From positions 5,826,302 through 5,890,301 of the forward strand of contig MU058065.1 in the NCBI GenBank assembly GCA_013265495.1: DNA of 64,000 bases, in the 5' to 3' direction. This DNA comes from Vicugna vicugna. Its lineage: Eukaryota. The notes beneath the pieces are model-generated. The model had not been told where the DNA came from and ran no database searches. It was given only the letters and a program-made list of their open reading frames with translations. Numbering within the stretch: the stretch's first letter is position 1; each line of letters opens with the position of its first letter. Both the position numbers and the translations under genes were made by a program. Shown here piece after piece: positions 6,720 to 53,313 of this stretch.

Positions 6720-6978
6720 CTGGAGACAGGGTACTAGAGTCAGACCTGAGGGACCCCTGGAGCCGAACTGACCCACTCAGGCCCACCTCAGCCCCAGGGG
6801 AGATAGCCCGAGGCAGGCAGAGTCAGGGGACAGGAGGGACGTGGGAGTTGAGAGAGTAAAACGTGCATGAAGATGGATGAGCAGGAGTGAGGGCACCTGA
6901 TAGAAAAAGCAGTGTTAGAGAGAGAAGGCTGCAGGGGGAGAAGATGAAGGCACAGAGGCAGGGCCCTGCCAAACTCAC

Positions 6979-7047
6979 CTGCCACCTCCGCCGGGAGAGG
7001 AATAGCTTTAGGTGATCCGTGCTCACCTCTGCGCCCTTTGCCTGTGT
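6979..7047 (-). CDS. SPEG: SPEG exon 29
   Basis: [23 protein letters not shown]; 69 nt. Confidence 0.95.
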
Positions 7048-8083
7048 CTGCAAACCAGGAAAGAGTGCCTGAGGGAAAGTCCTCTGTCCACCCTAACCCT
7101 CCAAGTTTGGCAATGGAGAGACAATGCCCACGGGAGGGGACAGTAGACCAAGCAGCATTGAGTCTGGGTTCCTGGGGCTCCCTTTCCCCTCGGATCTGTC
7201 ATAGCAACTCCCACGATCAAGGTACCCATGTATGGACAAATGCCCTGAACCTAAGTGGAGAAATAGGAAACCAGTGGCTCCAGGGGTGGGCTCTAGAGCT
7301 TATACCAGAGCTCAAGGCCCTGTCCTGGTCTACTGGCTGCCCTGGGAGACCCCTGGCTTGAACCCTGCTCCCCAAGTCACCATTTGTCTCCATCTAGAGC
7401 CAGCATCCCAGACATATGGAGTCTGGTGGGCCAGCCTTTGGAGGTGCTGCTCAGCGCCCACCCAGGTTACTCTTTTCAGAACTTATTTCTGAGCTGAGAG
7501 ATCAGGCTCCTCCTCCAGGGACAGATACCAGAATGACCTCAGCCTTCTGTTGACCCAGCACCATGCTCATTGGATGATTTATTCAGTTACTCTTTCTGGC
7601 TCATTTGCTGAACCCCTCCCTCTGCCTGGCACTGTGCCCTGTGGTGCTGGGGTTTGAAGATGAATAAGTGAGAGCTCTGCCCACACAGAGCTCAAAACCA
7701 AGAGGACAAGCCAGCCAGGCCACCCACCAACCACAGTATGTGGGACCAGGGCAGGATGGAGGAAGGCCACAGGAGTGCGGAGGACTGGGGCTGGTCTCAA
7801 GAGACAGGGAGAACCCTGATGAGGATCCCTAGGATGGGGAGGTCCAGACCTGTGCCTTGGAGTCCATGATACCCCAAGCTGAGCCTCAGTTTCCTTATCA
7901 GCAAAATGGAAGTAATAATACCTTCCTTTACAGAGCCATTGTGAGACTAACAGATCATATGTAAATAAAATGCATTATCATGGTTACTGTACACAGTAGG
8001 GACTCAATAATTGGAGCTGTTGATAAAGTTCTCTCTCCTTCCACCTCTTCTACCACCACATTGTGAGACAAGACTCACTTTAA

Positions 8084-8169
8084 TCTTTTTTTTAATGGAG
8101 GTACTGGGGATTGAACCCAGACCTTGTGCATGTTAAGCAGGTGCTCTACCACTGAGCTATTACCCTCCG
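8084..8169 (-). mobile_element. Short tRNA-derived SINE (camelid Vic-1-like) with 15-bp target-site duplication
   Basis: GGAGGGTAATAGCTCAGTGGTAGAG (A box)...GGTTCAATCCCCAGTACCTCC (B box) plus A tail; flanked by caagactcactttaa at 8069-8083 and 8170-8184. Family name from memory. Confidence 0.9.
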
Positions 8170-8179
8170 CAAGACTCAC

Positions 8180-8222
8180 TTTAAACCACGGATGTTCTAG
8201 GGTCTCCTCTGCGGTAGGTCTC
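8180..8222 (-). CDS. SPEG: SPEG exon 28 (end of kinase 1)
   Basis: ttacag|GAGACCTACCGCAGAGGAGACCCTAGAACATCCGTGGTTTAAA|gtgagt; RPTAEETLEHPWFK; 43 nt. Confidence 0.95.
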
Positions 8223-8253
8223 CTGTAAAGGAATGAGGATTAAGAAGGGATTT

Positions 8254-8289
8254 TTCATTCATTCATTCATTCATTCATTCATTCATTCA
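8254..8289. repeat. (TTCA)9 tetranucleotide repeat just upstream of the exon 28 acceptor
   Basis: Direct reading. Confidence 0.92.
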
Positions 8290-8420
8290 ATAAATGTTTG
8301 GGAAAACAGGGCCTCTAAGGAGTTGGGCGGTTAACTCCCTATGGAGAGGCTTGGGCAGGATTTGAGGGGTGGCATGAGGGGACCCTGCAAGGGGGAGGCT
8401 CCTTGGGGCCTCGTACTCAC

Positions 8421-8573
8421 AGGCGGTCCTGTACCAGCACTTTGATGAGGAAGCCTCGGGCCTCCCTGCTCAGGCTCAGGAATGTGGTCTCCTCGAAGGC
8501 CACGTTGTAGTTTCGGATGTTCATCAGCGTCGTCCGATCGTTTTCCCCAACAAATGGGGAGATTCCCGTCAGA
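8421..8573 (-). CDS. SPEG: SPEG exon 27
   Basis: [50 protein letters not shown]; 153 nt. Confidence 0.96.
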
Positions 8574-9254
8574 CTGTAGGGGTGGAGAGGGCTGGGTGAG
8601 AGGGGGCAGGGTCCTGGGGCTGGGGCAGAGACAAAGGTGGATGCCAGGGGAGCATAGGGCCAGGGACAGATGGAGGCACCAGAGCTGTGGGGCAGGCAGA
8701 GGCGGGGTGAACCTGGGCAGAATCTTGCAGATTCTTGCCTGCCCTGCCCCTATCCAAACCCAGGAATGGGCGGGGAGGCAGTAATGCCTTGAATCCTGGG
8801 CAACCAGGTCCTTCTCCTAAGCCCATACTCTAGAGGACCTGTTCCATCCCTCCTCCAGCCATGCCCTTTCCCTGAGGTGAGGAGTCTGTGCCAATGGGAT
8901 ATGCCCCAGGAGCCAGGGCCTCCCCCTCCTAGTCTGTGTTCTGGACTAGTTCCCTGCCTAAATGGCACTGAGCCTGCACTGGCCTCTCCCTGTCCTGCCT
9001 CCCAAGCACGCTGCCAGTGTGCCCGCTCTTATGGAGGGGCGTGGTGGTGGACAGAGCTTGGACACACAGTCTGGATGTCCACATTCATGCACATGAGGCC
9101 CCTTCCAGTGCAGGAAGGAGCCACAGTATGGAGGAGAAAGGGGTGGGCTGCAGGCCCCCAGCTGCTCTCTTGCCCCAGGTTCTGCAAATGTTAGCAGTGG
9201 ACCTGCTTGGAGACTGTTAGAAGACAGGGGTCCTGAGTGCAGAGGGGTCCTTAC

Positions 9255-9281
9255 CAGAGGAAGGCAACAACACCCACGGGC
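9255..9281 (-). CDS. SPEG: SPEG exon 26 (27-nt microexon)
   Basis: taccag|GCCCGTGGGTGTTGTTGCCTTCCTCTG|gtaagg; (W)PVGVVAFL(C), kinase helix F. Confidence 0.93.
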
Positions 9282-9828
9282 CTGGTAGAAAAGAAAGGAG
9301 AGTAGATGGGTAAGAGGACAGCCCACCTCCCACCGGAAGTGAGCAGTTCTCTTGCTACTGCTGATCTACTAAGGAAGCATCCTCCTTGTGAACACTGCCA
9401 TGCACAAATGGGCACAGGGATGCCTCCTTTGGGGAGGATCCTGAACCCAGAGGTCCCAACATGCCTGGAGGACTCAAGGGTCATGGCAGGGCCAGCCTAG
9501 GGAGCCCAGAGGAGTCTAGGGACCAAAAGGCCATGTCTGCCTCACTGGGGGAGGCAAGGTGGCTTCAGGCAGGGAGGCCTAGCACCTGGGGGTGGGGGGG
9601 AAGAGGAGCCAAGGACTATCAGGGCTGAGGCCTTGAGTGATCGGGTCAGCCCTGACAGATGAGGGGCAGGTAGTAACAAGGGCAGGAGGCCCCCGTGAGC
9701 AATGCCACCAGCCAACTGTCTGAGAAGGAATCAGAGTAAAGCTGTTCTCTGCCACCAAACGAGTCCTCAGCATGGCACTGAGGGAAGCTGCTCTGGCCCA
9801 CCCCAGCAGTCCCAGATGTCCATAATAC

Positions 9829-10007
9829 CAGATGTCAGTGACTCCGGATACAGGGGTCTGGTTGACAATCTCAGGTGCCACAAATTCAGGTGTGCCGTAC
9901 TGGCAGTACTGCGGCTCTCCTGGAATCAGCTCCTGAGCATTCCCGAAGTCACAGATCCTCACCTGCTCTTCACCCTCAACACCATCCCATACCAGCAGGT
10001 TCTCAGG
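9829..10007 (-). CDS. SPEG: SPEG exon 25 (DFG and APE motifs)
   Basis: [59 protein letters not shown]; 179 nt. Confidence 0.97.
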
Positions 10008-10114
10008 CTGTGGGGCACAAGGCAAGACGTGGGGACTGAGTGAAGAGGGGAGGACACCCCACTGCCTGGCTCCCACAGGTTCTGCCTGCTCCCCACTTCC
10101 CACCTGCATCTCAC

Positions 10115-10192
10115 CTTGACATCGAGGTGCAGCACATGGTTCTCGTGCAAGTAACATATTCCGTCTAGCACCTGCCGCATGTAGGCCCGGAT
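10115..10192 (-). CDS. SPEG: SPEG exon 24 (catalytic loop HLDVK)
   Basis: [26 protein letters not shown]; 78 nt. Confidence 0.96.
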
Positions 10193-10776
10193 CTGTGGAA
10201 ACAGGAGGCCCAGAATCGGGGGGTATTATGTTTGATCACCAGCAGGATTATGGTAAAAAGTCAGGCCACGCCTGGGAAGTGGCCTTCAGGTGGCTGGTGG
10301 AGCGGGCTGAAACATAGGTTTGGGGTTGCTGAGATTCAGGGCTTCCACGTACAGCTGCACAGGTTGCGTGCAGCAGAATTATAAGAGGGAGTCATTTACA
10401 TGATAATCAGTAGAATTGTGCAGTACACAACTTGTGCAGCCCTACAATGCAGGACAGCACTGAGACTGAACAGAGTCTAGGTGGAGCTCCTTCTGGAGAA
10501 ATGTGTGAGGAATACTTACGTAAGGAAGATTGGGAAACAACAGAGTTAGAGGCCAGGGTAGGTCTGCTGAGATTTACCGAGTACAAGTCCCAGGGTGCGG
10601 GTCTGCTCTGATGGGGGAAGGGGACTCTGCCGCCTGCCTAACAGTACTCCTCTCCACCACAACCCCCGCCTATTTGTGGGCACAGACGGCATGCCCAGGA
10701 GGCACCCCTTGGGTCTCGGAGCTCAGGTGGGTGAATGCTGGTGCGCAATCAGGCCCCTGCCACCCACTGCCCTCAC

Positions 10777-10834
10777 CTCAGACTCACACACGGTGGCTTT
10801 CCTGGCCATTCGCTCGAGCAGCTCCTCCGTGCAG
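10777..10834 (-). CDS. SPEG: SPEG exon 23
   Basis: CTEELLERMARKATVCESE; 58 nt. Confidence 0.95.
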
Positions 10835-11597
10835 CTATGTCCCAGATCAAGGAGAACAGTGACCAGTGCCAACAGCTGGGCCCGCCTTAGGCAGCACCCT
10901 CTACCCACAGAGCTCAGGTTGGGTCCTAGCTCAGCACAGGCTTCTCCTTCCCCTTAAAGCACATCTGATACCAGTTAGCAACTGCATCTTCCTTCTTCCC
11001 CCTGACATCTGGGACAGCCCTGCTTGGACTCTCACTTGCTGTGGGATCTCAGGCAAGTCATATAACCTCTCTGAATCTAGGTTCCCTGTGGTGTCAAATA
11101 GGGATAACACTCCTCTTGCCCACCCTGTGAAGTATCTAGAAGGATCAAGGTGGAGCAGTGTTTTGTTGACTGTTTATAGAACTTCTTGCCCCTATTTGAG
11201 AATGACCCAGAAGGTCTATGACACATAATAATTTGTCATTTTGCTGAGGTTTGGGTCCTAACAGTGCAGACTGGGAGGCTGGTATATATAGGACATGGTC
11301 ACCCTGCTAGGGGCAGTGACAAAGCCAACCACCCAGCCTCCTTACCTCGATATTTTTGAAACTCCTAGAACACTGCCAGGCACACATTAAGTGCTATGTA
11401 AATTTAAGATAAAAAAATGTTGGTTTTCACACATATGCCTCCAGACTCCATTCTAAAGAATTTATAAGACATCTTCAGAACTCCCAATTGTCAATGGGAC
11501 CACTATGTAAAGTGTAAGTCATGTTGCTAATTGGCTGTTACAATGATCAGTCATTCAGGCCGTGTGTCCCCCACCCGCCCAGCCTGCCCTAGGATAC

Positions 11598-11798
11598 AGC
11601 TCAGTGACAATGACCAGTCCCCGGCGCCTCTCGAAGGCCTCGTGGAAGTAGAGGACGCAGTCATGCTGGAGTCGGGCCAGCAGCCGGGCCTCCCGCCACG
11701 CTGATGCCTTTGGCTTGGCCTGACTGGGGATGAACTTGGCTGCAAACTCCAGGCCAGAGCTACGCTCCACCACACGCCGCAGGTAGGAGAAAGCACCC
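11598..11798 (-). CDS. SPEG: SPEG exon 22 (kinase 1 Gly loop, VAIK lysine, alphaC)
   Basis: [40 protein letters not shown]...GLVIVTEL; donor gtatcc; 201 nt. Confidence 0.96.
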
Positions 11799-11898
11799 CT
11801 GGGTGAGGACACAGGGAGAGGATGGGGATCAGACACTGCTGAGACTTAGATGCAGCCTCTCTCAGCCCCCGGACACAGCACCTGCCCCAGCCCCACAC

Positions 11899-11995
11899 CT
11901 GCCAATCTCCTGGTGGATGTCATAGAAGTCGCTGAGCCTCCTTCCTCGCTGCTCCTCGTCTTCCCCGACCCCCTCCACCTCCATAGCTGTCTGAG
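11899..11995 (-). CDS. SPEG: SPEG exon 21 (start of kinase 1)
   Basis: [31 protein letters not shown]; 97 nt. Confidence 0.95.
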
Positions 11996-12217
11996 CTGAG
12001 AAAGAGATGCCTGGTGTTAGGTGGGGAGGGCAGGAAGGAACGAGAGCATAGACTGGCCCAGGCAGGGCAGACAGAAGACACAGAAGAGAAGCAAGAATGT
12101 TGGGGGCCCGAGGCAGCGGTGCTGGGGCTGGAGGATGTGGTGGTCAGGAGTGAAGGGCCAGGTTGGGAGCTCACATCAGATTCCTGGGTGAGCACTTTGC
12201 CTTGAACTCCAGCCCAC

Positions 12218-12386
12218 CTGAGTGCACAGCCAACTCTGCTTTGCAGGAGACTTCACCAGCCAGGTTTCGGGCAGTGCAGGTGTAGACACCTCCGTCCTGG
12301 GCCCCCGCGCTGAGCACCACCAGGGAGCACTCATTCTCCTCGTACACGAAGCTCACGTGGTTGCTCTCTGTCAGCAGCACCTCATC
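12218..12386 (-). CDS. SPEG: SPEG exon 20
   Basis: [56 protein letters not shown]; 169 nt. Confidence 0.96.
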
Positions 12387-12788
12387 CTGCAGAGGTGGCT
12401 GTCACCTCCAGTCCAGGCCTGGCTTCACCTCCACCTGGGACTCAGCTGGAGCTCCATGCCAGAGACCCAGTCTCACCCCTACCGCAGGTCCCAGTTATCT
12501 CCACCCTAGGGGCCTTGCTCAGACCCAGAATAGGTTCCACCCTTATTTCTCATGAATAGTTCTGCAACCCCTCTTCCCACCCTGCCATGGTCCTCTGGTT
12601 CCTCAAACCCTTGCCAGTGTCACCAGCACCTCTGGGTGCCACTTCCTCCTCCTAACCACACCTCTGGTAGCTCCTTTGCTATTCTCTGTCCTGGCTCCCC
12701 TGATCCCTCCCACAGCCCCAGGAAATCCCTCCTCCCTTCCCCCTAGGCTCTTGGCCAGCCCCAAGCTAGGACTCCATCAGCCTCTGAC

Positions 12789-12901
12789 CTTGTACCACAT
12801 GATGTCCGGCAGTGGTTTCCCCTCAACCACCACAGCAAAGCGAGCAGTTTCTCCAGCCCCTACCTCCACATCCTCCATGATGGACTCAAATCGAGGGGCC
12901 T
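12789..12901 (-). CDS. SPEG: SPEG exon 19
   Basis: [37 protein letters not shown]; 113 nt. Confidence 0.96.
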
Positions 12902-14919
12902 CTGAAACACACAGGATTTAGGGTGGGGAAGGGAGGGGGACAGAACGTTGGGGTCACAAGGGCCTGCCTCCTCAGTCCTTCTCTAAACCCTCCCTAAGCA
13001 ACTGGCTCAGCCATAACACCAGACAACCCCCCACCTCCCAGAGCCCCAGCATCCCACCCTGGGACTCTCAGACTCGGCCCCGGGAACATGAGAGTTCCTT
13101 GCCTGGACCAAGTGCTCTCTCTACAAATCCAAATGTGATGTTCTCCAAATCTCAGAAAACCCAAGCCAGGGAATGCAGGCTTGCTTTGTTTGGATCTCAG
13201 TATTTTTGCCAGCTTCGAAATTAGGAGATTTTTACACACAAAAGAAATCTGGATTTCCTGCCTCTCTTGGAAAATCAGGACTGGCTGTCCTGAGCTGCCT
13301 CCCTCACTGCATTAATGCGCTGGTGAGGAGTGGCCGGACACTGCCCCCTGTGGGTGGCTGCCCTTCTGCACAGTCCGACTGCGGGCTTCTCTGACTTTAC
13401 CTGTCCTGGGCCTTGCAGGTGGCTCAGTCTGTGACCCTGAATCAAGTTCACGGATGGCATTGCCTCTATCTTGAAGTTTTCTCCCTGAATCTTATTTAAA
13501 TATTTAAGGGGACTTCTACGATCTGGGAGCTGGCAAGATGAATAACCGGGTACCGATTCTCGGTTTAGTTCTCCCACATGCGACTGATTTTATTCTCTAC
13601 ACATATCATGCATTTGTGGTATTTCCTGGTAAGGCAGTTTCTAATTCTCATGATGGAATTAAATACATATTCCAACGTGCTTGTGCTTTTCGGAGAAGCC
13701 TGTGACGTTCTGGTGCCCTCCCCCAGCATGTTTGAGGATCCTGGCTTTAAGGGGAGTGAGAGAGATAGGCACTCAGGGAAAAGCTGGGCAGGGAGCACCT
13801 CATGTCCAAGCACATAGCTCAACTTTTATGCAGATAAAGGGGGAGGTCATCCTGGGAGCAGGGAAGATGCATCAGTGGGGCAGGTGTGGAGGAAAGAGGC
13901 CATTCTACCTGCCTGTGGGAGAGGGGGTGGGGCACAGCAGGAGGGGGTGCAGATCCAAGCCCCAGGCCTGCTCTAGCCCTGGCCAGCTGGGTCAGGGTTT
14001 CCCTCAGTTACTGTCCCAGCCAGGCCCGCTGCAGGGCTCTTGGTGGCCAGGGCCTCCCCAAACCTTGAGTCTCCTCCTATATCTGGGAAGAAAGATGAGT
14101 CCTGGAGGTGGTACTGTCAAGGAGCAAAGTGATGGCTGAGTAGGAAGTGCTGGGGTGGGGTAGGGGGAAGCTAGGCAAAGGGGAAGACACATAAAAGGGA
14201 AACCAGAGGCCCAGATCACCTGCAGCCCCTCCCTACCCACCCTCCACAGAGGGGCCAGTAGGGTCCCCGTTATCTCCTCCTCACACACTCTACTGCCACC
14301 TCTCTTCTAGTTTAAAGCTGCCTGCCCTGCTCTCTAGGAATCTGGTCCTAGTCTGCTGGGGGTGGGGAGTGGGTGTGGGTGGGGGCAGTGGCAGGGGTCA
14401 GACTATGAAGGTCAAAGGATCAGAAGGTTTTAAGCCAACTTCAATGACTTTTTTTAAAGCACCAGAAAATGTACATTTACCCCATGATACGATGGCCTGT
14501 GTTAACTAAAATGTCACTTCCTTTGCATTTGGTTGGAACCTTATCTACTCAGCAGGTAACACTGTTTAGCTCATGCTGATCCGAAGTTCTGAGTGGCAGT
14601 TACATATGTCTAGAGTTAATTAACAAACCAGCAAACAAGACAATTACTACTTAATGCATGCTACGGCCTGAGAGACTGTATCTTGAAAGGAGAAATTATT
14701 AAATTATTAAATTATTATTATTAATCCTCACTGCAAAGATGGGGAGGCTCGCCAAAGAGGCTTATGCAAAAAGGCAACAGCCAGGATCCCTAGAGCTGAG
14801 AGTCTGGTGATAAGATGAGCTCACTTGGGCCTTTTTCTTTTTTAAGTTGACTTGGACCCTCTCCCGGCTTGTTATACTTGAGGTTCTACTTTCTGTTGTG
14901 TTTAACGCAGGAGCTAACA

Positions 14920-15178
14920 GCATAGTCTGGCTTTGGAGTAGGGCACCTAGCCTTGAATCCCAGCTCCTGACTGATTAGGTTATGTGACCTTGGGCCTATT
15001 ACTTAGCACAATCTCTGAGCCTCGGTTTCCCCATCTGTAAAATGGGGATAATAACCGACTCCATCTTCCAGGGTTGACAGAAATGTTAAATGAGGTGATA
15101 AATGTAAGCTAATTAGCACTGAGCCTGGCACATACTAGGTGTTCAATAAATATCTTTATTAGTACTATTACTGTTATT
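14920..15178 (+). mobile_element. MIR SINE (representative; about a dozen more MIR fragments occur, e.g. ~3970-4140, 7880-8010, 18960-19130, 21340-21490, 47710-47860, 48400-48620)
   Basis: tgtgaccttggg...ctctgagcctcggtttccccatctgtaaaatggggataata core. Confidence 0.75.
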
Positions 15179-15326
15179 GTGGCTAGGACTGGTATTATTG
15201 TGGCCATTAAATGGCCCCTGAGAGGGGAGACCTAGGCCTGGCAGGTGGGTGTGCATCCCTCGGGGTATGAGGAGAAGGCTGTGGGCCTCAGAGGGAGGAG
15301 AGGGAAGGAGGCCGGCTGTCACCCAC

Positions 15327-15502
15327 CTGCCAGCTCCAGTGTGACTGAGCAGGCCTGTGTGCCGTGGCGGTTGCGGGCAGTGCAGGTAAGGGCCCCCATA
15401 TCCCGGCGGCTCACCCGGCAGATCCGAAGACAGTACTGGTCGTCATCTGGCTGGCTCAGTTCGTACACACCAGCCCGGGCCTCTAGGAGGGCCCCTCGGC
15501 AG
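15327..15502 (-). CDS. SPEG: SPEG exon 18
   Basis: [58 protein letters not shown]; 176 nt. Confidence 0.96.
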
Positions 15503-15603
15503 CTAAGGGACACACGACAGGGAGGTCACGCAGGATCCAGACCTGGTCACCTGGAGCTGGGCTGCCTCATGTGAGGCACAGGGCATGCAAGGCAGAGCCC
15601 CAC

Positions 15604-15727
15604 CTCCTCCAGACGACCTGGGCCTCCACATGGTTGAAGGTGACGGTGACACTGGCAGGCTGTCCCTCCACCACATACACGATGTCTGGCTTGTCCAGCA
15701 CGGCGGGTGCCTCCTCCAGGGGCGGGC
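15604..15727 (-). CDS. SPEG: SPEG exon 17
   Basis: [40 protein letters not shown]; 124 nt. Confidence 0.95.
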
Positions 15728-16130
15728 CTGGGAGGAGGAGGGCTGGCTTTATGCTGGGTTTGACGCCAGATCTTCAGCACCCACTGCTCTTTGAACCCTC
15801 CCAATCACCATGCAAACTCCATTTTTCAGATGATGAAGCTGAGGTTCAGAGGTGTTTAGCAACTTGTCTAGGGGAACACAGCCAGTAGGCAGCAGAGCTG
15901 GGATTGGACCTCCAGCTGGTCTGACTTAGAGCTTCAGCCTTGTCCACTGCATGCGCTATTTCCGGAGTGGGAAGGAAGCACTCTGACGAGTAGGGGTCAC
16001 AGCCAGCCATCCCATTCCCACCGTAGTTTTCATGTCCAAATCAGCCCTGGAATCTCCTCCATGGACACCCAGTTCCCTGGCCTAGCAGCTCTTGCCCCCA
16101 CCTCCACCCCACAGGAACCCCCCGACTCAC

Positions 16131-16337
16131 CGTGTTCCAGCAGCTGCACTGGCTCAGAGGGGGGCGAGGGCTTGCTGCTGCTCTTGATGGTGGTGCTGAG
16201 GACCCGGAAGATGTGCTGGATCCCTTTACGCAGACCCATGGCCGCCCACCCGGGTTCCCGCAGGCCCGAGGCCAGCGCTGTCCACTGGTCCGAGCCCAGC
16301 ACCTGGTGCTGCACAGTGTAGGTCAGGGCATCTGGGT
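16131..16337 (-). CDS. SPEG: SPEG exon 16 (FN3)
   Basis: [30 protein letters not shown]...[10 protein letters not shown]; 207 nt. Confidence 0.96.
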
Positions 16338-16953
16338 CTGGGGGGAAGGCAGCTGCTAGAGATGGGCCTTGCTGGGGTGCCCTCTGTCCCTATTCAGCTG
16401 ACTTGGGAACCAGGAACTCATCATCATTCTGCTCTGAGGACCTGCCTCAGCTTCTCCTGTTGCTTCTGCCTGTCCCCCATCTGCTCCTGCCCAACCACAG
16501 GCCTGGCCAGGCTCAGAGCCAATGAGGTGTAAGGTGTGGGGTCCAGTTACAGGCATGGGGGGAGCTTGACTTAATCCCAATTCCTTGCTGCTACCTGAGG
16601 TAGGGAGAAGCACAGAGCAGGAATAGATGCCCAGGGAAGGAGAGGGGTTTCCCAGGATCACAACCCAAGCACCCACTCCCTTTGAGAAGAGAAGGGAATG
16701 TGGCAGCCTCCACTTTGTCTCCTCTCCTGACCTGGAGCCGGAGCTTCACCCACCATGGAGAAGGGACCAGCAAAGCCCCTCCTGGCCATGCTCCCAGTGC
16801 TCCATCTATTCCCACCCCTCACCTGTATGCCCCTATGCCCCTGTGCCCTGCTGGGCCTTGCTCTCCCTTCCTGCCCACCCTCGGTTCCCTTGGCTAAGAC
16901 TGCCCTGTCCACGCCCCCATCCCTACCCACATCCCTGTGTGGTCCAGACCCAC

Positions 16954-17058
16954 CAATGGCCATGTCCAGACTCCTGGGGGGGTTCCACATGAGTTTGATC
17001 ATCCTCCCAGTCACAGCCACCACTTGCGGGGCACCATCTGGGGGGCCTGGAACCACAT
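16954..17058 (-). CDS. SPEG: SPEG exon 15 (FN3 start)
   Basis: [34 protein letters not shown]; 105 nt. Confidence 0.95.
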
Positions 17059-17300
17059 CTGAAAGCCACACATAGAATGTCTGCTGGGTTTTAGGGCCCC
17101 ATGGCCCCGCAGGACCACCAAGCTTTGGGGCAATGGGCTGGGGGCTGGGGACATGGTCATAGGGGCAGAGGCAAGGCCAGATGGCTCCCCAGGGGACCAA
17201 GGGGAAGGGAGCTGGTGTGGAAGCCACTCCCTTGCCCAGCGTGTGGGCAGGCCAGAGGCTGGGCTGTGGATGCACCTGACCAGGAGGGTACCTGCCTCAC

Positions 17301-17420
17301 CTGTGACATAGAGGTGGGCATAGCAGGCAGCTTTGCCCAGCTTGTTGGCGATGACGCTCTTGTAGACACCGGCATGCTGAGGTCCCACAGCAGGAAACAC
17401 TAAGCGATGGACATCCCTGT
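17301..17420 (-). CDS. SPEG: SPEG exon 14
   Basis: [39 protein letters not shown]; 120 nt. Confidence 0.96.
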
Positions 17421-19884
17421 CTGGGGGGGAGGGACAATGACATTGTCCTGAGCTAGGGGCATACTCTGGGGGATGGGTCCATGCCACCCAGGCCTGGCCA
17501 TCCACCCCCACTTGCTACAAGGAGCAGAGCAGACACAAGAAGGGTGTCCATCATGCAGCAAACTCTAGGTCCGGGCTGCCAAGTCCACACCTACAGCCCT
17601 GGCCCCTCTTGCCTGTCCCTCTAGCACTTCAGACTCAGTGACTTCTCATCTTCCTCCCATACCAATTCACCCTCTGCAGGTTCCTACCCCATTGACTGCC
17701 CCTCATCTCCGCATCTCTCAGGGTTCATGACCTCCATGTCCAAGTTCTGACAAGACTTTGTGCCCAAGTGCCTTCTTCTCCATCCCCAAGGCCACTGGCC
17801 ATGAAAGCTTCCACCAGTGTGGTCTGCATTGCATGTTACCTCTTGATCTGGAAACCTCAATGGCACCTACTGCCAATCAGGTGGCATCCAAAGCCTTCGG
17901 CCCAAACTCCCACCGAGCCACGTCTCCTGCTATTCCTCCACATTCTGACCCTGACCTGCCATCAGGTCCCTGAACAAGCCACATGAGTTCCCACTCCAGG
18001 TCTTTGCTCACAAAATTCTTCCCTTCTGGAATGTTCTTCTCTTACCTAAGGCTTCCTTTTCCTTCAAGTTGCAGTTCAAGTGAGTGCCAGTCCTGGGAAG
18101 CTTCCTGTCTGTGCCCCTGGTCCCCTCTATACCTCCATCTCTGACTCCCTCCCCAGGACATCCAGCACCCAGCCCAGACTGCTTTGGGTGGTCCTTCCTT
18201 TTTTCTTGCACGTATCATGCCTTCTGCAAGCTCCTTAAAGACAGCTGATTTGTCCTGCCAAGCCCAGAACCTGACGCCTTGCATACAGTTAAGTGCCAAG
18301 TACATTAGATTATAAATTACAAGAAGAGTTGTCTGCACTATGGCTAGACCATGCCAGATACTTCACATGCATTTTTTTCTCCATAAGCCTTTCAACAACC
18401 CTGCAAAATTATCCTCATTTTACCAGTGAGGTCAGAGACATTAACAGACTTGTCCAAGGTCATACCACTAATAAATGATGATGCTACAGCCTGAACTTGC
18501 TTCCCTCTGACTCTGAAGCTGTCTCCCTACCCTGTGCTCCCTGCATGATGGTAAGGAGGCCATCCCCGGGGGGATGTGAAGGGGAAGAGACCTGCACTGT
18601 CCTCCTTCCTTGACATCAGGGCCATCCCCAAACACCCCTCCCTCCTCTTAGCGATTATCTCTGCATGGAACAATCACTGGTTCATTTATCTCTGCTGACA
18701 CTATTTATACGGGAAGAGAAGCCCAGGGCTGCCACTGACCCCAGATACAGACAGAAGCAGAGACGCCAGCTCAGATCCTGAGACAGACACCCACCCGGGG
18801 CCTCAGGGCAGAATGATAGACAGGAAGCCTGTGGGCTGAGCAAAGACAGCCATGGAAGGGGTTGAGGGGAGGGTCACAGCCACGGTGGTGACACAGGAGA
18901 TGGGAGGGGAGAGTGAGGCATGGGCAAAAGGGGACGTCCTGGTCAGGAGGTGGACACCAGAGTCACGCCATTCCTGTCTGCCTTTGGGCAAGTCACTGAC
19001 CCTCTATAAGCCTCAGTTCCCCAATCTGGAAACAGGGATAATAGCACCTGCCTCACAGGTCTGTGGTGAGGAAGGTGAGATCATCCCTGTCAGGCCTCAA
19101 GCACCCAGGGCCCGGCACTCAGGAAGGGCTTAGTAAAGGTGAGTTTTGTCACACTGCAGCCAGAAGAGGAGCCCATCACAGGTCACGGGGTGGCACTGCT
19201 GGTGGGGAGGAGGTAGACCTTCTCACAGGAGACTCAGATTCCCTCAAGGGTGGAACTAAGATACTCCGTGAGAAAACATCCTAGGCTGAGAGGACATGGT
19301 CCCAAATACGTTCCTAGGTATTTTCCCCACTCTTTCTTCTTTATTTGCCTTTTACCAACCCCGGACCAAGCATCCATTTGATACCAGACACTGCCCACAC
19401 TGGGCTTTTCACTAGAATTTCTCCAGGAGGGTGTGAGCAGCAGCGCTTTATCAACAAGGATGCTGATGGTGGCAACAACCGCAGTACCCGTAAGAGTAAC
19501 ACTTATCGACCCCTTGTTATTGGCCAGGCCCTGCCCTAAGTGCTTTCCATGCATTCACTGATTCAATTCTCACCACAAGCCTACCACAGATGAGGGAACT
19601 GAGGCACAGAGGGGTCCTGTAACTTGCCCGCAGTCAGTAGCAGGCTGTACTGCCCATCCAGTAAATGCTAACAGGCCACCAAGGCCCAGACTGGTGACCC
19701 AGCTGACGGGTGCTGTGTGAGCTCAAGGGCTCAAGGAAGGAGGCAGTGGCCTCATAGCCTCTCTGCGCTCCCCTCTCCCAGGCACAATGAAGACTGCAAA
19801 GCAAGACCCAAAGGTGGGAGAGGGAACTGCAAGCAAAAAGGGTGCTGGAGGGGACACCCCTAGGGTCCCCTCCTGGACACGTAC

Positions 19885-20108
19885 ACTGTGTCATGCGCCG
19901 GTCATCGCTGCTCTGGATGCGGTGGCCATTGTGGAACCAGGTGATGGTGGGGTAGGGCAGGCCGGTCACTTGGCACTCCAGCATGGCCTCCTTGGCCAGT
20001 CCCACATCCAGGTCCTGCAGTGGCCGCAGGAAGTCAGGCATGGACAGCCGCTCCAGCTCGCCCTGCTCGGGTTCCTCGGGGATGGATGGCATCTTCTCCA
20101 GCTTCGAG
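19885..20108 (-). CDS. SPEG: SPEG exon 13
   Basis: [47 protein letters not shown]...DDRRMTQ; 224 nt. Confidence 0.96.
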
Positions 20109-23251: not shown

Positions 23252-24476
23252 GACCTGGCTAGGGCCCCTCTAAAATGGCCAGGGCGGCACTGCCACTTTC
23301 AGCTCCCCTGAGGTCAGCCCTGGGGTGGATGGGGAGGGACTGCAGCCAGCCAGAGACTAGGTCTCCAGGGTTCCTGGGCAGCTAGAGGCCCTGGATAACC
23401 AAGCGAGAGGCATTCCCAGGAGTCAGGAGCACCCCAAAGCCTGGGGGATGTTGGGAGAAATCCCAAAAAGAGAGAAGCACTGAGACGTGGGTTAATACAG
23501 AGAAGCAAGGCAGAGCCAGACCCTGAGGGGAAGGAGCAGGCCAGGGAATGGGGCTGCGTTGGGGGGCTGAGAGCTGAAGAATTCAGAGACGGAGGAAGTA
23601 GCAACCCCAGGAACTGGAGGCACAGGACAGGGGAACTGAGGCAGGTGGGGCCCTGGTAGGTGACCATGACTCTCAGGGTCTGGGCTCCAACAGGGGGCTG
23701 AGAGTATCCTCATAGCTGGCCTCTTCCAGGAAGGAAGGGGTGGTGGCTGAGTGCAGAGCTGAGGAGGGGTTCCTGACTCTGACCTGCCCATGAGAAGAGT
23801 GAGTGGAAGGTCAGGCAAATGGCCTGCCCTCAAGAGGAAAATCACTAGCCCCTGGGGACAGCCTGGCTAGGGCCTGTCATCCCCGCTGCCTGGAAGGTTG
23901 CCCCGACTCTGAGGGCCCGGCCCTCTCCACACTTCCCAGCTCTGTTTACCCTGGCACCCCTGGGGTCCCTGCGATGCTCCATGCTCAAGTCACTCCAAGG
24001 GCCCCTCCGGACGGGTCCAGCTATCAGACTCTCCCCACTGCCACCCCCAACCATAATACCTTCTGCACAGCAATGGGATGGGTAGAGGAGACAAGAGAAG
24101 AGCGGAAGTGGGTGTAAGTAAGGGTCCTGTCAAGGACAAGGTGACAAAAGCTCAGAAGAGTGTGGGGAGAGGACGGCCGGCGACGGGAAGCAGGGTCTCT
24201 GGCTGGCACTGAGGCAGGTGTGACTCAGCATAGGGAAAGCAGTACCAAATAGCAAGCCGAGCACTGAACAATATGCTGTGTGGCCTTGGGCAAATCACCT
24301 CCCCTCTCTGGGCCTTAGTTTATTCAACTACAGCGTAAGCAGCTAAACCTGGGGACCTCAAAGGTCCCTTTGGTTCTGGCATCCTAGAACTAAGGTTGTG
24401 TGAAAGTTGGCAAGTGGGCAGGGATGAGGTCGGGGCCAGGATGCGGGGGAGTTCGTGGAGAGTGTGAGGTGCTCAC

Positions 24477-24652
24477 CTCTGACCTCCAGGCGCGCCTCGC
24501 ACTGCCGAGCGCCATACTCGTTAACTGCTTTGCAAGTGTAGAAGCCAGCGTCGCCCCGCTCAGCAGCCAGAATCCGAAGCCGGCACAGCCCACCCTCTGC
24601 CTCCTCGGCGAAGCGCCGCTGGTCTGGGCGCACGGGCTGACGGTTTCTCAGC
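24477..24652 (-). CDS. SPEG: SPEG exon 9 (Ig3 with RGD)
   Basis: [58 protein letters not shown]; 176 nt. Confidence 0.97.
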
Positions 24653-25557
24653 CTGTCAGAGAAGCAAGAACTCAGTCCCAGGCCCAGGGGCCTGACCTGC
24701 ATGCACTGGGGAGTGGGGCTGCAGCGCCAATCAGGCCTTCCCTCTCCCCACATCATCTGTCCACTTTCCAGATCTGTCCCGCTGACCCTGGGCACCTGGG
24801 TTAGGGCTAAGTTTTCCCCCTGACTCTGTCATATCATCCCCTCCAGGAACTTCCAGACTACCTCTGCCCACCTGGGTCTCTCCTTTCTTGGAATTTAACC
24901 ACACTTAGAGTAGCACCAAGCTATTCAGCTCTTACTAATTTTTAGATTCTGTGTCATGTTATTTATTTTAATGGACAGATAGCTCTCCCACTTCCCGAAA
25001 GAAATATGAAATAATTTACAATATCAAAAAGAATCAGTTAAAAGTGAAAAATAGAACCCAAACCAATAGAAAGCTAAGCAAACTGAATAATCGAAGTTCA
25101 GGCATTTGGAATGAAACACTACAGCTGAGGCCTGAGTTTAACTCTGGGCTCTGGCAGCTCAGAAACAAATTATGTGTGGGCCTAGCACAGGGCTGGGCAA
25201 AGAGCAGGCCTCAAAAATCACCCTATTGTCAACTGATGGTGGTGGGGACAAGGGGTAGGGGGCCAGGCTTCTCCAGGAGTAAGATGACTCCTAGCCATTC
25301 ATCCCAAGTGGACAGGCAGGAAACCATTAGTTCCCCAAACCCCTCCCTAGAGGGGAAGCCCTGAAACAGCCTGGACCTCAGGCAAGGGGCGGGGCATGTT
25401 GGGGGAAGCAGCACCACCATACCTAGGATGAGGCCCCCCGGGCAGATCACGGGTTGGTCCGCAAAGGGTCCACTGCCCTCCACCCAAAGCCAGGCTTCGC
25501 AAGGTGCAGCCTGGAGTGAGTGACACTGGCAGATGGTGGTCAGTGGCTGCTACTCAC

Positions 25558-37263: not shown

Positions 37264-38564
37264 CGAGCTCAGGTGAGGTGGGCCGGGCCCGGCGACCTCT
37301 GCCCTGGCTGCGGGCCCCACGGCGGTCCCAGGGCCCCCAAGGACCGTCCTCCTCTGGCCCTCTGCGCAGCCTCTTCTCGGCTTCAGGCCCCACCCTGTTC
37401 TTTTCCAAGGTCTGGGGCACAGCAGCGCCCTCCTGGCCCGGCGTGGCCCAGGGCAGGAAGCGCACGGCCTGCGGCGGGGGCTCCCGCTTCCGACCTGGCG
37501 GGGCTCTCGTCCTGGTCTCGGGGGGATCGGCGCCGGGGGGCGGCACGGGGCTCCGGCACTCCTGGATGGCTCTGCTCCGGGTCAGCGGGAACTGGTCCCG
37601 GCGCCTAACCTCTTGCTGTGGACCTTCCCCGGGCTCCGTCCTGCCTGCTGGCCCGCGGCTCCGAGGCCTCCCTGGCTCATCCCCGGGCTTCCCCGCGACG
37701 CTCGGAGGGGGCGGCTGGGCGGCTTCGGGGCTCAAGGCCCGCGGGGTCTTGGGNNNNNNNNNNNNNNNNNNNNNNNNNNNNNNNNNNNNNNNNNNNNNNN
37801 NNNNNNNNNNNNNNNNNNNNNNNNNNNNNNNNNNNNNNNNNNNNNNNNNNNNNNNNNNNNNNNNNNNNNNNNNNNNNNNNNNNNNNNNNNNNNNNNNNNN
37901 NNNNNNNNNGTCGGAGGCTGGGCTGCGCTGCCGCGTGCGCTCGTCTAGCGAGGCCGCCTTCTGCTGGAACAGGCGGCGCCGCTCGGCCACGCTGCCCGCC
38001 GGCGCCCGCAGCTCCTCCTGCGAGGCCCCCGGCGTGCCCCACTGCCCGCCGCCCTCAGACTTGGGCTGNNNNNNNNNNNNNNNNNNNNNNNNNNNNNNNN
38101 NNNNNNNNNNNNNNNNNNNNNNNNNNNNNNNNNNNNNNNNNNNNNNNNNNNNNNNNNNNNNNNNNNNNNNNNNNNNNNNNNNNNNNNNNNNNNNNNNNNN
38201 NNNNNNNNNNNNNNNNCCCAGCGCCGACTGGCGGCCCGAGGCCTCGCTCAGGGGCGTCTGGGGCCGGGACTCCGCCGTGCCCGTTAGCGAGGGCCCCGAC
38301 GACTTAGACTTTTTCCCTCGCTTGTCTTCGGCGGTGACGTCCTCGGGCGGCACCGGCTCGCGAGTGCGCCGGTGGGGCGGCGTGGGGATGGCCGTGGGCT
38401 GGGCGCTAGGTCCCGGCGGAGGCCGCTTACCCACCCGAGGGGACGGTGGGGGCAACAGCGCGGATTTGGAGGGAGGCGGCAGGGCCGGGCGACGAGGGGC
38501 TTCGCTGGCCGGCTGAGGCTGAAGGTCAAGCTCCTCCCTATGCAGTCCACTCTGAGGGACGCTG
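37264..38564 (-). CDS. SPEG: SPEG exon 4 (large Pro/Arg/Ser-rich exon, two N-runs)
   Basis: [17 protein letters not shown]...[26 protein letters not shown]...RARPTSPEL; frame preserved across both gaps; donor G|gtaagg; 1301 nt. Confidence 0.95.
37754..37909. other. N-run, 156 nt
   Basis: Direct reading; inside exon 4. Confidence 0.99.
38069..38216. other. N-run, 148 nt
   Basis: Direct reading; inside exon 4. Confidence 0.99.
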
Positions 38565-39589
38565 CTGCAGAACCGAGACGAAGAGGGGTAGAAGATTCAG
38601 GGGGGCTCCCTCCTAGACCTTCAGCTCGCGACAGGCATCGGCGGTGGGCATGCTGGGAAGGCTTGAGTGTGACATGGGCCAGACCCTTCTCCCCCTCCCC
38701 CCTAAGAGGAAGGCACAGCCAGAGCAGGTGCTGGGGAGAGGCTGGCGACTCTGGCACCGGAAGATTGGGCTGGTGGCTGGGTCCAGGTACAGACTCAGTC
38801 CCAGGGGCTCAGGCCAGCCCCCTCCCCCCAGCCCCGGAAGCTGGGAAACAGCAGGAACAGAACTGAGTGGTGGGAGAGAAAAGAATGAGGCTTAGGACCT
38901 GAAGGATGAAGTGGTGAGGGAAGGCGGGAGGATTCGATGGGGAGGGGCCCTCTCAGGAATGCAGCCTCCCACTCATTCCTGCCCCCAGCTGGCCCCTACA
39001 GCCCTGCCCATCCTCAGCAGGACATGCCCTGTTCACTGTGGCCCCCAGAAGAACAGGCACATGCCTTCCAGGAGCAATGCCCTTATCCCTGGGCTTGCCT
39101 AGCACCTCCTCAGACCTGAGCCCCTCACCAGTGCTGCCAGGATGAAGCAGGTGGCAGCCAGGGTCCCTGGGGTGGGAAACGAAGACACCCAGTTTCCTGT
39201 TCCCTTTGATTAGTCTGCCCCTAGTACAGGCCTTTGAATTTGTCTCACCCCTGGGAAAGTTACCTTGAGTCCTTGGAAACCCCCCTGAGAAACACAGAGC
39301 TCCTCAAAGGAGTAGGCTCAGAAATAACTCAGCTCAGAAATAACTGCTGCGTGGGCCTGGACGGCGGGTACGGGAAAGAAGGAGGAAGGTGCTGGTCAGC
39401 CCAGAGTGCCCTCTCGCCTCCAAAGCTTTGATGCCTACGAGCTGGGCCTCACCTTCCCCCATCCAGGCCCTTGGTGGTGGGGGGTTCACATCAAATATAG
39501 AGGTTAGCAAGAAAAGGAATCTGAGACGTTAGCATCATACCTGACACATTAGAGGGAGCTTAATAAAAGCTTATGAAATGGCTCGTTGA

Positions 39590-39785
39590 GTACTTATTGT
39601 GTGCCAGGCATGTGCTGAAAGCTTATTGAGTCATTTAATCCTTACGACAATCCTCTGAGGTAGGAACTGTTATTCTCTCCATTTCCAGATGAAGAAACTG
39701 AGGCTTAAAGAGGTGAAGTGCCTTACCAAGGTAACACAGCTAGGAAATGGTTGGTGCTAGGACTGAAACCCAGGTAGTCTGGCTT
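39590..39785 (-). mobile_element. MIR SINE (reverse)
   Basis: tgtgccaggc...catttccagatgaagaaactgaggcttaaagaggtgaagtgccttaccaaggtaacacagcta. Confidence 0.75.
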
Positions 39786-40818
39786 GTGAGCCTTTGTTCC
39801 CTCCAAAATGTCTGGGATTCTGGAGGTACAAAAGGGAAGAGAAATGGTAGGGTACCAGCCACAAGCAGAAGTTCTAGGGGTGCCTAAGTCTCAGGATATT
39901 TTAGACTACCTGGGTCAGCCACCCACACTGCAAACCTCACCTCTGACTAGGGGGTAGAGGAGGAGGGAAGATGCAATCCAGAGTGCCCTGAGGGAGCAGA
40001 ACCTCGGGCAGCCACCTGCAGGGAGGCAGAGTCTACTCTAGGGGAGGGACAACAGTCCCCTAGGAATGGCCTCTGGGAACTGGGTGAGGCATGGAGAGAA
40101 ATTGGAGACAGCAGAGGAGGCCTCTTGCCGGCAGTTTCAAGCTCCAGGCCAGCCTCTGTACCACAGACATTACTGAGGAAATGGGTTCCTCGGAAGTTGC
40201 CATAGCAACTCCAGGCTCCGGCTGGGGCTTGGCAAAGAAAGGCAGGGAAGGAAAAGGCAAGTCCAGGGCACGGGAGCGCCTGGCTAATGCCAACCAGATA
40301 AGACAAGGGAGCCTCCCCTGCGTCTGCCTTGGACCTCTCCCCTGTCTACCACTAGCCACCTCAGCCAACATCAAAAAGGCTTCCCTACACCAGGCCCCTT
40401 TTTTCTCTTCCGTGATGGTACCTCCCCCACACACCCATACCTATCCCCAATCAGGCCCCCCTCAGCTCCCCAAATGCCCCCCAATACCTCTTTCATCAGC
40501 CACTCCCCTCTTCTACTATAGCACTCCCTCTTGTATCCGCCAGCCCCAAACCTCCAAAAATGGCTCCAATGGCTCACTCCAACACCTCCGCTCCTCACCA
40601 CCCCCTACCAGGACAACCTTCAACCCCACCCTCGGGCGTTTCCCCCCAAATCCTCACGTGCCCCCACCTCCATCACTCCAAGCCCTCTGCCTCCACCCGA
40701 GCCCCCTGTCCCCATCCCACCTGGCCCCAGTCCCCTGATACTTCACATCCCCCTGCTTTCCCAGGCCCCTGGCCCCATCTACCCCCTGACCACCTTGCTC
40801 TCTTCTGTCTCCTGGTTG

Positions 40819-40958
40819 NNNNNNNNNNNNNNNNNNNNNNNNNNNNNNNNNNNNNNNNNNNNNNNNNNNNNNNNNNNNNNNNNNNNNNNNNNNNNNNNNN
40901 NNNNNNNNNNNNNNNNNNNNNNNNNNNNNNNNNNNNNNNNNNNNNNNNNNNNNNNNNN
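40819..40958. other. N-run, 140 nt
   Basis: Direct reading; intron 3. Confidence 0.99.
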
Positions 40959-41327
40959 CCCCGAGGGGGGGGGATCCTGGGGACAACTGGAGCCTGAATG
41001 GGTGAGGCAGTAGAGGGCCCCCGGGAGAGTGGAGATCTTGGAGGAAACAGGAAGGGAGAGGGGGTCCACGAGACCATGGAGATGGCACAGTAAGCCAGGA
41101 CAGGTGGGAGCAGGAGGATGTAGGTGGTGATGGCACAGGAGGAGGATGGAGCCATGTGGGAGATAAAGTGGGTAACTGGGGCCAGGAGTGGAAGCAGTTG
41201 GGGGTGGAGAAGTGCACAGAGAGATGGATGATGCTGGGGACGTGGAGGGTAGAGGCTGATGAGCGGTGAGGGGCAGTGCAGGACAGCATGGTGAGGTAGG
41301 ACAGAGTGGGCCCAGGTGAGGCCATTA

Positions 41328-41539
41328 NNNNNNNNNNNNNNNNNNNNNNNNNNNNNNNNNNNNNNNNNNNNNNNNNNNNNNNNNNNNNNNNNNNNNNNNN
41401 NNNNNNNNNNNNNNNNNNNNNNNNNNNNNNNNNNNNNNNNNNNNNNNNNNNNNNNNNNNNNNNNNNNNNNNNNNNNNNNNNNNNNNNNNNNNNNNNNNNN
41501 NNNNNNNNNNNNNNNNNNNNNNNNNNNNNNNNNNNNNNN
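41328..41539. other. N-run, 212 nt
   Basis: Direct reading; covers the 3' part of exon 3 and its donor. Confidence 0.99.
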
Positions 41540-41669
41540 CCCCTGCTGCCCGCTTCCTGCTCCAGGACCGTCTGCCCGCTGCCCCACCAGCTCACTTGCT
41601 CCTCTGAGGTGCCTGTCACGGAGGTCGGGGGTGTGTCCAAGGAGGTGCCCACCAGGGTGTCAGAGCCCC
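41333..41669 (-). CDS. SPEG: SPEG exon 3 (3' part inside N-run)
   Basis: tag|GGGGCTCTGAC; [41 protein letters not shown] then Ns. The end at 41333 is inferred from the remembered human exon size and phase, not seen. Confidence 0.85.
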
Positions 41670-41751
41670 CTAGAGAAAGGAGCACAGTGAAGCTCGGCAG
41701 CTCTTGGGGACAGCTCGCCTGCTGGCTTTGTGAGCGCCCCAGAGAGCTCAC

Positions 41752-41841
41752 CCGTGGGGGTGCTGAAGGCCCCGTCATCCCGAAGCTCCAGGCGCTGGGT
41801 CCCCTGCACATCGCTGATGTCATCCTCACCCGTCTCCGAGT
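41752..41841 (-). CDS. SPEG: SPEG exon 2
   Basis: [30 protein letters not shown]; cag|AC...CGG|gtgagc; 90 nt. Confidence 0.95.
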
Positions 41842-42414
41842 CTGAAGAAGAAGGGGTCTGTGTGGGCAGGACTCTCCTCCCTCTGACTCCAACGCTTCCC
41901 TCTGTCACCTTCTGCCTCCCCCACAGCAGGCTCCATATCGTCACCGGGAAAGCTTCCAGAACCTAGCTTCTCCCCCTCTTTTGCTCCCCACATCCCTCTG
42001 CCTATCCTGGGAGGCTCAGGGTAACCCCTCCCATGCTGGTCCCCTGGCTCCATCTCTGGGCCCTTGGCTCCTCACCCCTGCCTCCTTGGTAGTGCCCCCA
42101 AAGCTACCTAGAGTACACCCTCCCAGCCACTTAATGGATGGCAGGGCCGCAGCCCCTCTCCATCCTCCCCTGTTGGTGACAGCTTGTGTTCCTGAGCAGC
42201 CCCCAAAATCACAAGGTCCTAGGTGCCAAGGCTCTAAGTGCTGGGTTCCAGTACCCCAGGAACAAAGGGGAGTCACCTCAGAGTCGTACTGTCAGGGCAC
42301 TCGACCAACCGCAGGACCAGCCTGTCCTCCACCCCAAATCAGCTGGAACACATCCGGGTGCAGCTGAGGCAGGGTGAGGAGAGGCCAGGTCGGGCAGGGA
42401 AGTGGGGGAGTGGA

Positions 42415-42546
42415 NNNNNNNNNNNNNNNNNNNNNNNNNNNNNNNNNNNNNNNNNNNNNNNNNNNNNNNNNNNNNNNNNNNNNNNNNNNNNNNNNNNNNN
42501 NNNNNNNNNNNNNNNNNNNNNNNNNNNNNNNNNNNNNNNNNNNNNN
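42415..42546. other. N-run, 132 nt
   Basis: Direct reading; intron 1. Confidence 0.99.
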
Positions 42547-42772
42547 GGGCAGGCAGGACGGAGGGGCCATGAGGCTACCCAGTGCCCAGAGATGCCCTGT
42601 GGGGATGGGAGCAAGGGGAGGGAGACACCTGGGATGGGCAAAGCATCTCATTCTCTGCCTGCCTGCAGGTTCGGCTGGGCCCACCTTTGGGCAGTCCATG
42701 TGCTTTGGCAGATTATTCCAACTACCCCAGTGATTCTGGACCCTTGGCAATTTCACTGGTGCTCCCACTGGC

Positions 42773-42778
42773 CACACA

Positions 42779-42829
<51 letters not shown>
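42773..42829. repeat. (CA)n microsatellite, ~28 units with one interruption
   Basis: Direct reading. Confidence 0.97.
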
Positions 42830-42831
<2 letters not shown>

Positions 42832-53174: not shown

Positions 53175-53313
53175 GGGGGGAGGGTGTAACTCAAGTGGTA
53201 GAGTGTATGCTTAGCATGCACAGGGTCTTGGGTTCAATCCCCGTACCTCCTCTAAAAATAAATAAATAGACCTACTAATTACCTACCCCCCACCAAAAAA
53301 TAAAATAAAATAA
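53175..53313 (+). mobile_element. Full-length tRNA-derived SINE (camelid Vic-1-like) with 19-bp TSD
   Basis: GGGGGGAGGGTGTAACTCAAGTGGTAGAG...GGTTCAATCCCCGTACCTCC...A-rich tail; TSD aaatgtaaa(c/t)tgaattcta at 53156-53174 and 53314-53332. Confidence 0.9.

Follow-up and report, generated by a model that had tools for sequence, protein, structure and literature searches.

A SINE insertion and a duplicated exon 28 splice donor in the SPEG gene of camelids

The SPEG locus around exon 28

The stretch of DNA analysed here (64,000 nucleotides, hereafter the window) carries the gene SPEG, whose exons discussed below lie on the minus strand. An immunoglobulin exon at 24361–24828 is identical to human APEG-1 (PDB entry 1u2h) over 61 of 61 residues, nearby open reading frame (ORF) pieces match the Pkinase family and tandem kinase domains are present, as in SPEG. 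The SPEG-specific linker exon groups with named SPEG proteins in a cluster look-up and, in a search with the porpoise SPEG protein, the end of kinase domain 1 shows 96–100% identity to named SPEG proteins of many mammals, including Camelus. Mapping of the dromedary X1 protein onto its gene gave 41 coding exons, in which RPTAEETLEHPWFK is encoded by exon 28, the segment starting with TQAKG by exon 29 and the linker by exon 30; the exon numbering used in a preliminary description of this DNA is therefore correct. Loss of SPEG is reported to lead to centronuclear myopathy and to cardiomyopathy; mice in which the gene is knocked out are described as dying perinatally.

Exon 28 closes kinase domain 1 and is preceded by an acceptor reading ...ctttacag on the minus strand. 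Canonical splicing joins EHPWFK to TQAKG across exons 28 and 29, using the intron 28 acceptor ...tttgcag/ACACAGG at 7048/7047 (a slash marks the exon–intron border, except in TT/AAAG, in which it marks the nick). The features of the region are listed in Table 1. Three further observations concern its surroundings. A (GAAT)n microsatellite lies at 8254–8288 (minus strand), about 30–65 nt upstream of the exon 28 acceptor in the zone in which the branch point is expected; GAAT-like sequence is also found in warthog and polar bear, but is shorter there. The start of the native part of intron 28 (about 7900–8068, minus strand) aligns well among camelids, warthog and polar bear and resembles an old MIR-type repeat (TTATTGAG..CTACTGTGT..). 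Lastly, six runs of N lie inside SPEG at 37754–44518, each of 132–212 bases and with a total of 1000.

Table 1. Features at the exon 28–intron 28–exon 29 region of SPEG (positions in the window).
Feature	Position	Strand	Basis
SPEG coding exon 28, 43 nt, g + RPTAEETLEHPWFK, last exon of kinase domain 1 (...EHPWFK)	8180..8222	-	Translation; same peptide and junction in named SPEG proteins
Repeat copy 1: last five exon bases and original donor AAA/GTGAGTCTTG, GT at 8179/8178	8170..8184	-	Script check; single copy at the warthog and polar bear sites
Simple SINE, 86 nt, sense-oriented, tRNA-Ala-derived	8084..8169	-	Rfam tRNA match and ARAGORN
SINE head, tRNA-Ala-derived, 74 nt	8096..8169	-	Rfam and ARAGORN; A-box-like and B-box-like motifs
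SINE tail TTAAAAAAAAGA, A-rich (A8GA end)	8084..8095	-	Sequence reading
Repeat copy 2: duplicated donor AAA/GTGAGTCTTG, GT at 8078/8077, followed by native intron	8069..8083	-	Identical to copy 1 at 15 of 15 positions
Remainder of intron 28, native sequence adjoining the duplicated donor	7048..8068	-	Warthog and polar bear alignments continue straight from the single-copy 15-mer
SPEG coding exon 29, 69 nt	6979..7047	-	Translation and dromedary X1 mapping
TGA reached in exon 29 on use of the distal donor	7023..7025	-	Script; ORF of that frame ends at 7023

The SINE insert and the duplicated donor

The insert begins at position +11 of intron 28, i.e. 10 nt inside the intron, and has no body, its tRNA-derived head passing straight into an A-rich tail. 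On the minus strand it ends in AAAAAAAAGA, after which TTAAA GTGAGTCTTG occurs a second time and unrelated intron sequence follows. Rfam returned a tRNA match of 44.4 bits (E = 3.9e-8, model positions 1–71), ARAGORN called a tRNA at 8096–8167, and A-box-like and B-box-like motifs (TAGCTCAGTGG and GGTTCAATCCC), read by eye and unscored, are present in the head. The element folds as a cloverleaf with a predicted energy of -23.4 kcal/mol. The sense-oriented 86-nt tRNA-derived SINE named in the preliminary description is confirmed, and both programs call the insert tRNA-like.

The SINE belongs to an abundant family. At least 2901 first-look candidate copies were counted in the same genome and all 40 that were scored are 92–100% identical to this copy, the 39 others falling between 92 and 96%. 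The anticodon is AGC (Ala) in 24 of the 29 other copies compared, which identifies tRNA-Ala as the source; ARAGORN reported a tRNA-Val because the present copy carries AAC through a G-to-A change. Relative to the majority sequence of these 29 copies it differs at four of 76 positions, while the 29 themselves average 4.5 differences, indicating that its age is typical of the family. We take the insert to be a vic-1-like camelid simple SINE, a likeness that was drawn from the description of vic-1. The vic-1 element of camels is classed as a simple SINE in SINEBase (PMC3531059), and vic-1, as described there with reference to Lin et al. (2001), has like the present SINE a tRNA-related head and an A-rich tail but no body, and is likewise present in many copies in camelids. 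The only further copy of the family in the window lies at 53179–53262 on the plus strand, antisense to SPEG, with 82.6% identity.

The insert is flanked by two copies of the 15-mer TTAAAGTGAGTCTTG, i.e. TTAAA followed by GTGAGTCTTG, which run from 8184 to 8170 and from 8083 to 8069. The copies match at all 15 positions and the bases outside both ends differ, as determined by a script that also placed the two donor GT dinucleotides at 8179 and 8078, where the identical donors 101 nt apart had been proposed. The target sequence fits the LINE-1 endonuclease preference TT/AAAG, again as had been suggested. The repeat is thus real over 15 bp, whereas the length of the target-site duplication (TSD) itself, initially put at 15 bp, may be anything from 13 to 15 bp, as the TT ahead of copy 2 could come from the tail of the SINE: with a nick at TT/AAAG the true duplication would be 13 bp and the preceding TT would be SINE tail; otherwise it would be 15 bp. 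Counted either way, the two donors are identical from -5 to +10, and they share a single acceptor.

The donor 9-mer, AAA/GTGAGT, matches the consensus at eight of nine positions, the exception being an A instead of a G at -1. When all GT dinucleotides between 8189 and 8044 were scanned, only the two twins reached 8/9, and the next best, AGG/GTAATA at 8163 and AAG/GTCTGG at 8122, each scored 6/9. Both of these weaker sites lie inside the SINE. Use of the 8163 site would shift the frame. The weak cryptic donor at 8122 (GT on the minus strand) would add 57 nt in frame and place a 19-residue insert, VSLAEGNSSVVEHLLNMHK, ahead of TQAKG; in Camelus, a T replaces the G at -1 of this site (AAT/GT).

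Filled and empty sites in camelids and outgroups

The window genome was compared with chromosome assemblies of dromedary, Bactrian camel and wild Bactrian camel (C. ferus) and, as outgroups, with warthog and polar bear; the SPEG genes of Camelus, warthog and polar bear were located through their SPEG proteins. In all three Camelus assemblies the SINE occupies the same position between two intact 15-mers and differs from the window copy by two substitutions (AAG-GTC to AAT-GTC and CCC-CAG to CCC-TAG in DNA). Warthog and polar bear have an empty site with exactly one copy of the 15-mer and a clean alignment gap of 101 nt, which corresponds to the SINE plus one repeat. In warthog, the empty site reads ...CCCTGGT TTAAAGTGAGTCTTG TCTCAC..., the single copy being identical to the repeat. 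These empty sites and the size of the gap take the repeat well beyond a chance match and support the proposal that a single retrotransposition step made the second donor.

Over 13.1 kb (6900–20000), divergence from the window is 2.14% for each Camelus species, and divergence within Camelus is 0.05–0.28% (0.27–0.28% for dromedary versus Bactrian, 0.05% for Bactrian versus C. ferus). The contrast between 2.14% and at most 0.28% places the window genome outside the genus Camelus, presumably among the New World camelids, and since the SINE is shared across that divergence its insertion predates the split between the two. From these alignments, the insertion is old and common to all four camelid genomes compared, and is neither recent, private nor polymorphic. 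The preliminary description had called the change lineage-specific and had proposed a search for presence or absence of the SINE across camelids; the term holds at the level of the camelid family and not more narrowly, as the window genome and three Camelus species have the insertion in common.

A rival reading takes the duplication for an artefact of assembly, or for an insertion that is private to the sequenced animal or polymorphic. This reading has a negligible probability. The same structure recurs in three independent Camelus chromosome assemblies, and the DNA runs of nine studies hold 0.91–0.96 of the sampled words of 7100–9300. The filled Camelus sites together with the empty sites in warthog and polar bear refute it, and nothing was found in its favour. 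We also considered the intact state of the duplicate as a sign of selection and rejected it, as only about 0.3 substitutions are expected per 15 nt at 2.14% divergence.

In the history that best accounts for the locus, a vic-1-like SINE entered SPEG intron 28 at a point 10 nt from its start, through LINE-1 target-primed reverse transcription, before the lineages of the window genome and of Camelus separated. A staggered cut across the exon–intron border left a TSD of 13–15 bp and with it the second donor, identical to AAA/GTGAGT of the first and 101 nt downstream of it.

Competition between the two donors

Script translation of the two possible transcripts gave clearly different products. Use of the distal donor adds 101 nt, giving an exon of 144 nt and a frame of +2, and the predicted product reads ...HPWFK VSLAEGNSSVVEHLLNMHKVWVQSPVPPLKKRL KHRQRAQR before the stop, with no stop within the SINE. 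The earlier statements that the SINE would be exonised without a stop and that the frameshift would then give KHRQRAQR and a stop in exon 29 were reproduced exactly. The predicted stop falls within exon 29, and at least 12 of the 41 coding exons follow it. Because it stands upstream of many exon junctions, the distal-donor transcript is expected to be a substrate of nonsense-mediated decay (NMD), one of the two fates foreseen for it, the other being a product that ends just after an intact kinase 1.

The annotated proteins point to the original donor. All seven retrieved camelid SPEG protein models that span the junction (dromedary X1, two dromedary X4 models from different annotation releases, Bactrian X5, C. 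ferus/Bactrian X1 and X7, and a masked near-copy of the window protein) read HPWFK/TQAKG, and the SINE peptide occurs in none of 292 retrieved proteins. A HMMER search with exon 28 plus the SINE peptide against 1.84 billion representatives returned no protein in the exonised form. In a search of ORF clusters on assembled run contigs with exon 30, every match was a genomic ORF from another mammal, with an identity of 96.7% or less, and camelids were absent. These results lend no support to the 'splice switch' of the preliminary description. The protein models show that the proximal donor makes the productive SPEG mRNA; they are compatible with a frameshifted minor isoform, which would not appear among them as automatic protein annotation favours open reading frames. 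SPEG exons are represented in eight RNA runs from two studies; the word share in RNA runs, 0.53–0.58, is too noisy to separate an expectation of about 0.56 without the SINE exon from one of about 0.59 if it is included.

Two unusual models were met among the proteins. P0273 (Camelus ferus/C. bactrianus SPEG isoform X9, 1814 residues; NCBI) is truncated and departs from the reading frame within kinase 1, following ...MARKATV, with a tail that corresponds to the window ORF at 9579..10157; the event is distinct from the SINE donor and indicates that truncated SPEG models do get annotated in camels. P0288, a predicted protein of 158 residues, contains four tandem repeats of ...ITLEEAINHPWFK-VSL, as though a kinase-end exon and its donor (AAA GTG AGT CTT) had been repeated in tandem and translated in one open frame; it may be an exon-border repeat in another kinase gene, of the kind described below for F7.

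Competition between identical donors has been described in both directions. In intron 7 of human F7 (Borensztajn et al., 2006; PMC1557585), the authentic donor is followed by four to eight identical copies at a spacing of 37 nt and only the most upstream site is used; the downstream copies function once the first is disabled, and mutation of the G triplets left the choice of donor unchanged. One or two pseudo-sites are in use in the repeat arrays of IFI6/6-16 and CBS (PMC1557585). As in SPEG, the F7 repeat unit crosses the exon–intron border and places exact copies of the authentic donor in the intron. The two cases differ in origin, F7 having a 37-bp minisatellite of four to eight copies formed by tandem repetition and SPEG a single copy, 101 nt away, made by the TSD of a retrotransposon, and the F7 donor (UGG/gugggu) is weaker than AAA/GTGAGT of SPEG. 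By analogy, the silent copies of F7 may serve as a natural precedent for a silent duplicate in SPEG.

Engineered substrates behave differently. According to Hodson et al. (2012; PMC3413131) and the work cited there, when two identical good donors lie at least 45 nt apart nearly all splicing uses the downstream (intron-proximal) twin, both in vitro and in HeLa cells, and a GUGAGU globin site is among those covered. These substrates resemble SPEG in having two identical donors with good complementarity to U1, more than 45 nt apart and with one acceptor, and differ in the spacer, that of SPEG being tRNA-like and structured and containing G triplets and an A-run. A preference of this type predicts substantial use of the duplicate and so runs against a silent one.

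With substantial use, the duplicated donor would divert SPEG transcripts into NMD throughout the camelids, whether constitutively or under tissue regulation, and so reduce the yield of SPEG alpha/beta. We regard this as unlikely but deserving of weight, as the twins are identical from -5 to +10, duplicated donors at least 45 nt apart favour the downstream site in the experiments cited above, the distal twin retains the whole native intron context and the duplicate is intact in two lineages 2.14% apart. The last of these points is uninformative on selection at the expected number of substitutions given above, and the reading is opposed by the essential role of SPEG, by the proximal donor in all annotated camelid proteins and by the silence of the identical F7 pseudo-sites. 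A downstream-twin outcome would inactivate an essential gene, and the context in SPEG must therefore favour the upstream twin. The contexts do differ, the upstream donor keeping the native exon and the downstream one the whole native intron. RNA folding predicts similar accessibility for both (mean unpaired probability of 0.58 versus 0.49) and does not discriminate between them. Two G triplets lie between the twins, GGAGGG at the head of the SINE and CTGGGTT in the B-box-like motif, together with the A-run. Intronic enhancers between competing donors have been reported to favour the upstream donor, in the account cited in PMC1557585, and by analogy the G triplets are a possible cause of an upstream preference in SPEG.

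Escape from decay would have another consequence, namely a stable truncated SPEG that has kinase 1 and a 41-residue tail derived from the SINE, lacks the linker and kinase 2, and has a function of its own. The open frame through the SINE and the complete kinase 1 would allow such a protein. We nevertheless hold it to be very improbable, given a stop far upstream of many exon junctions and the NMD expected from it, the lack of any such protein among those retrieved, and the two Camelus substitutions in the SINE, both of which alter the would-be peptide and give no sign of constraint. That the duplicate is really put to use in camelids, whether as a regulated splicing–NMD valve on SPEG dosage or for a kinase-1-only isoform, is on the whole decidedly doubtful.

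The explanation that we prefer is that the duplicate is a silent or minor pseudo-donor. The original upstream donor would give the productive SPEG mRNA, and any transcripts from the distal donor would meet the stop in exon 29 and be removed by NMD. The presence of the insertion in every camelid genome compared, in a gene that is essential, means that normal splicing was not abolished; as loss of SPEG is lethal and yet the SINE is present in four camelid genomes, the upstream donor must have stayed in sufficient use ever since the insertion. We infer low use of the duplicate on these grounds, and consider a silent or minor role, with its products as NMD substrates, to be probable.

The closest parallel that we found concerns an acceptor. 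In a literature search for a TSD that duplicates a splice donor, only the merle allele of canine PMEL (PMC7349775) came close. As in SPEG, a SINE sits on a splice site within a 15-bp TSD that holds the original splice signal, and the splicing outcome in merle is set by competition between sites. The merle SINE is antisense, at an acceptor, young, polymorphic and phenotypic, and its cryptic site comes from the SINE itself; the SPEG SINE is sense-oriented, at a donor, old and common to the camelid genomes compared, and its extra site is the duplicated native donor. The dog SINE in LAMA3 was considered as a further precedent and rejected because it is exonic.

On the evidence of the sequence comparisons, a splice donor of an essential gene has here been duplicated by the TSD of a SINE, and the duplication is common to the camelid genomes compared. 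A functional donor was copied in a single retrotransposition event, in a gene that is lethal when lost, and the change is documented by a filled site in four camelid genomes and an empty site in two outgroups. The choice that camelids make between the SPEG twins would set the laboratory rule, in which the downstream donor wins, against the natural example of F7, in which the upstream donor does, in vivo. A duplicate in use would give camelids an inbuilt drain or switch on SPEG, which is linked to centronuclear myopathy and to cardiomyopathy. A silent one would make the SINE spacer a candidate natural insulator between competing donors and, if fully silent, the locus would be a natural exception to the intron-proximal rule, more than 10 million years old and enforced by the G triplets, tRNA-like fold and A-run of the spacer. 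Used or silent, the twin donors of camelid SPEG would provide a clean natural setting in which 5' splice sites of an essential gene compete.
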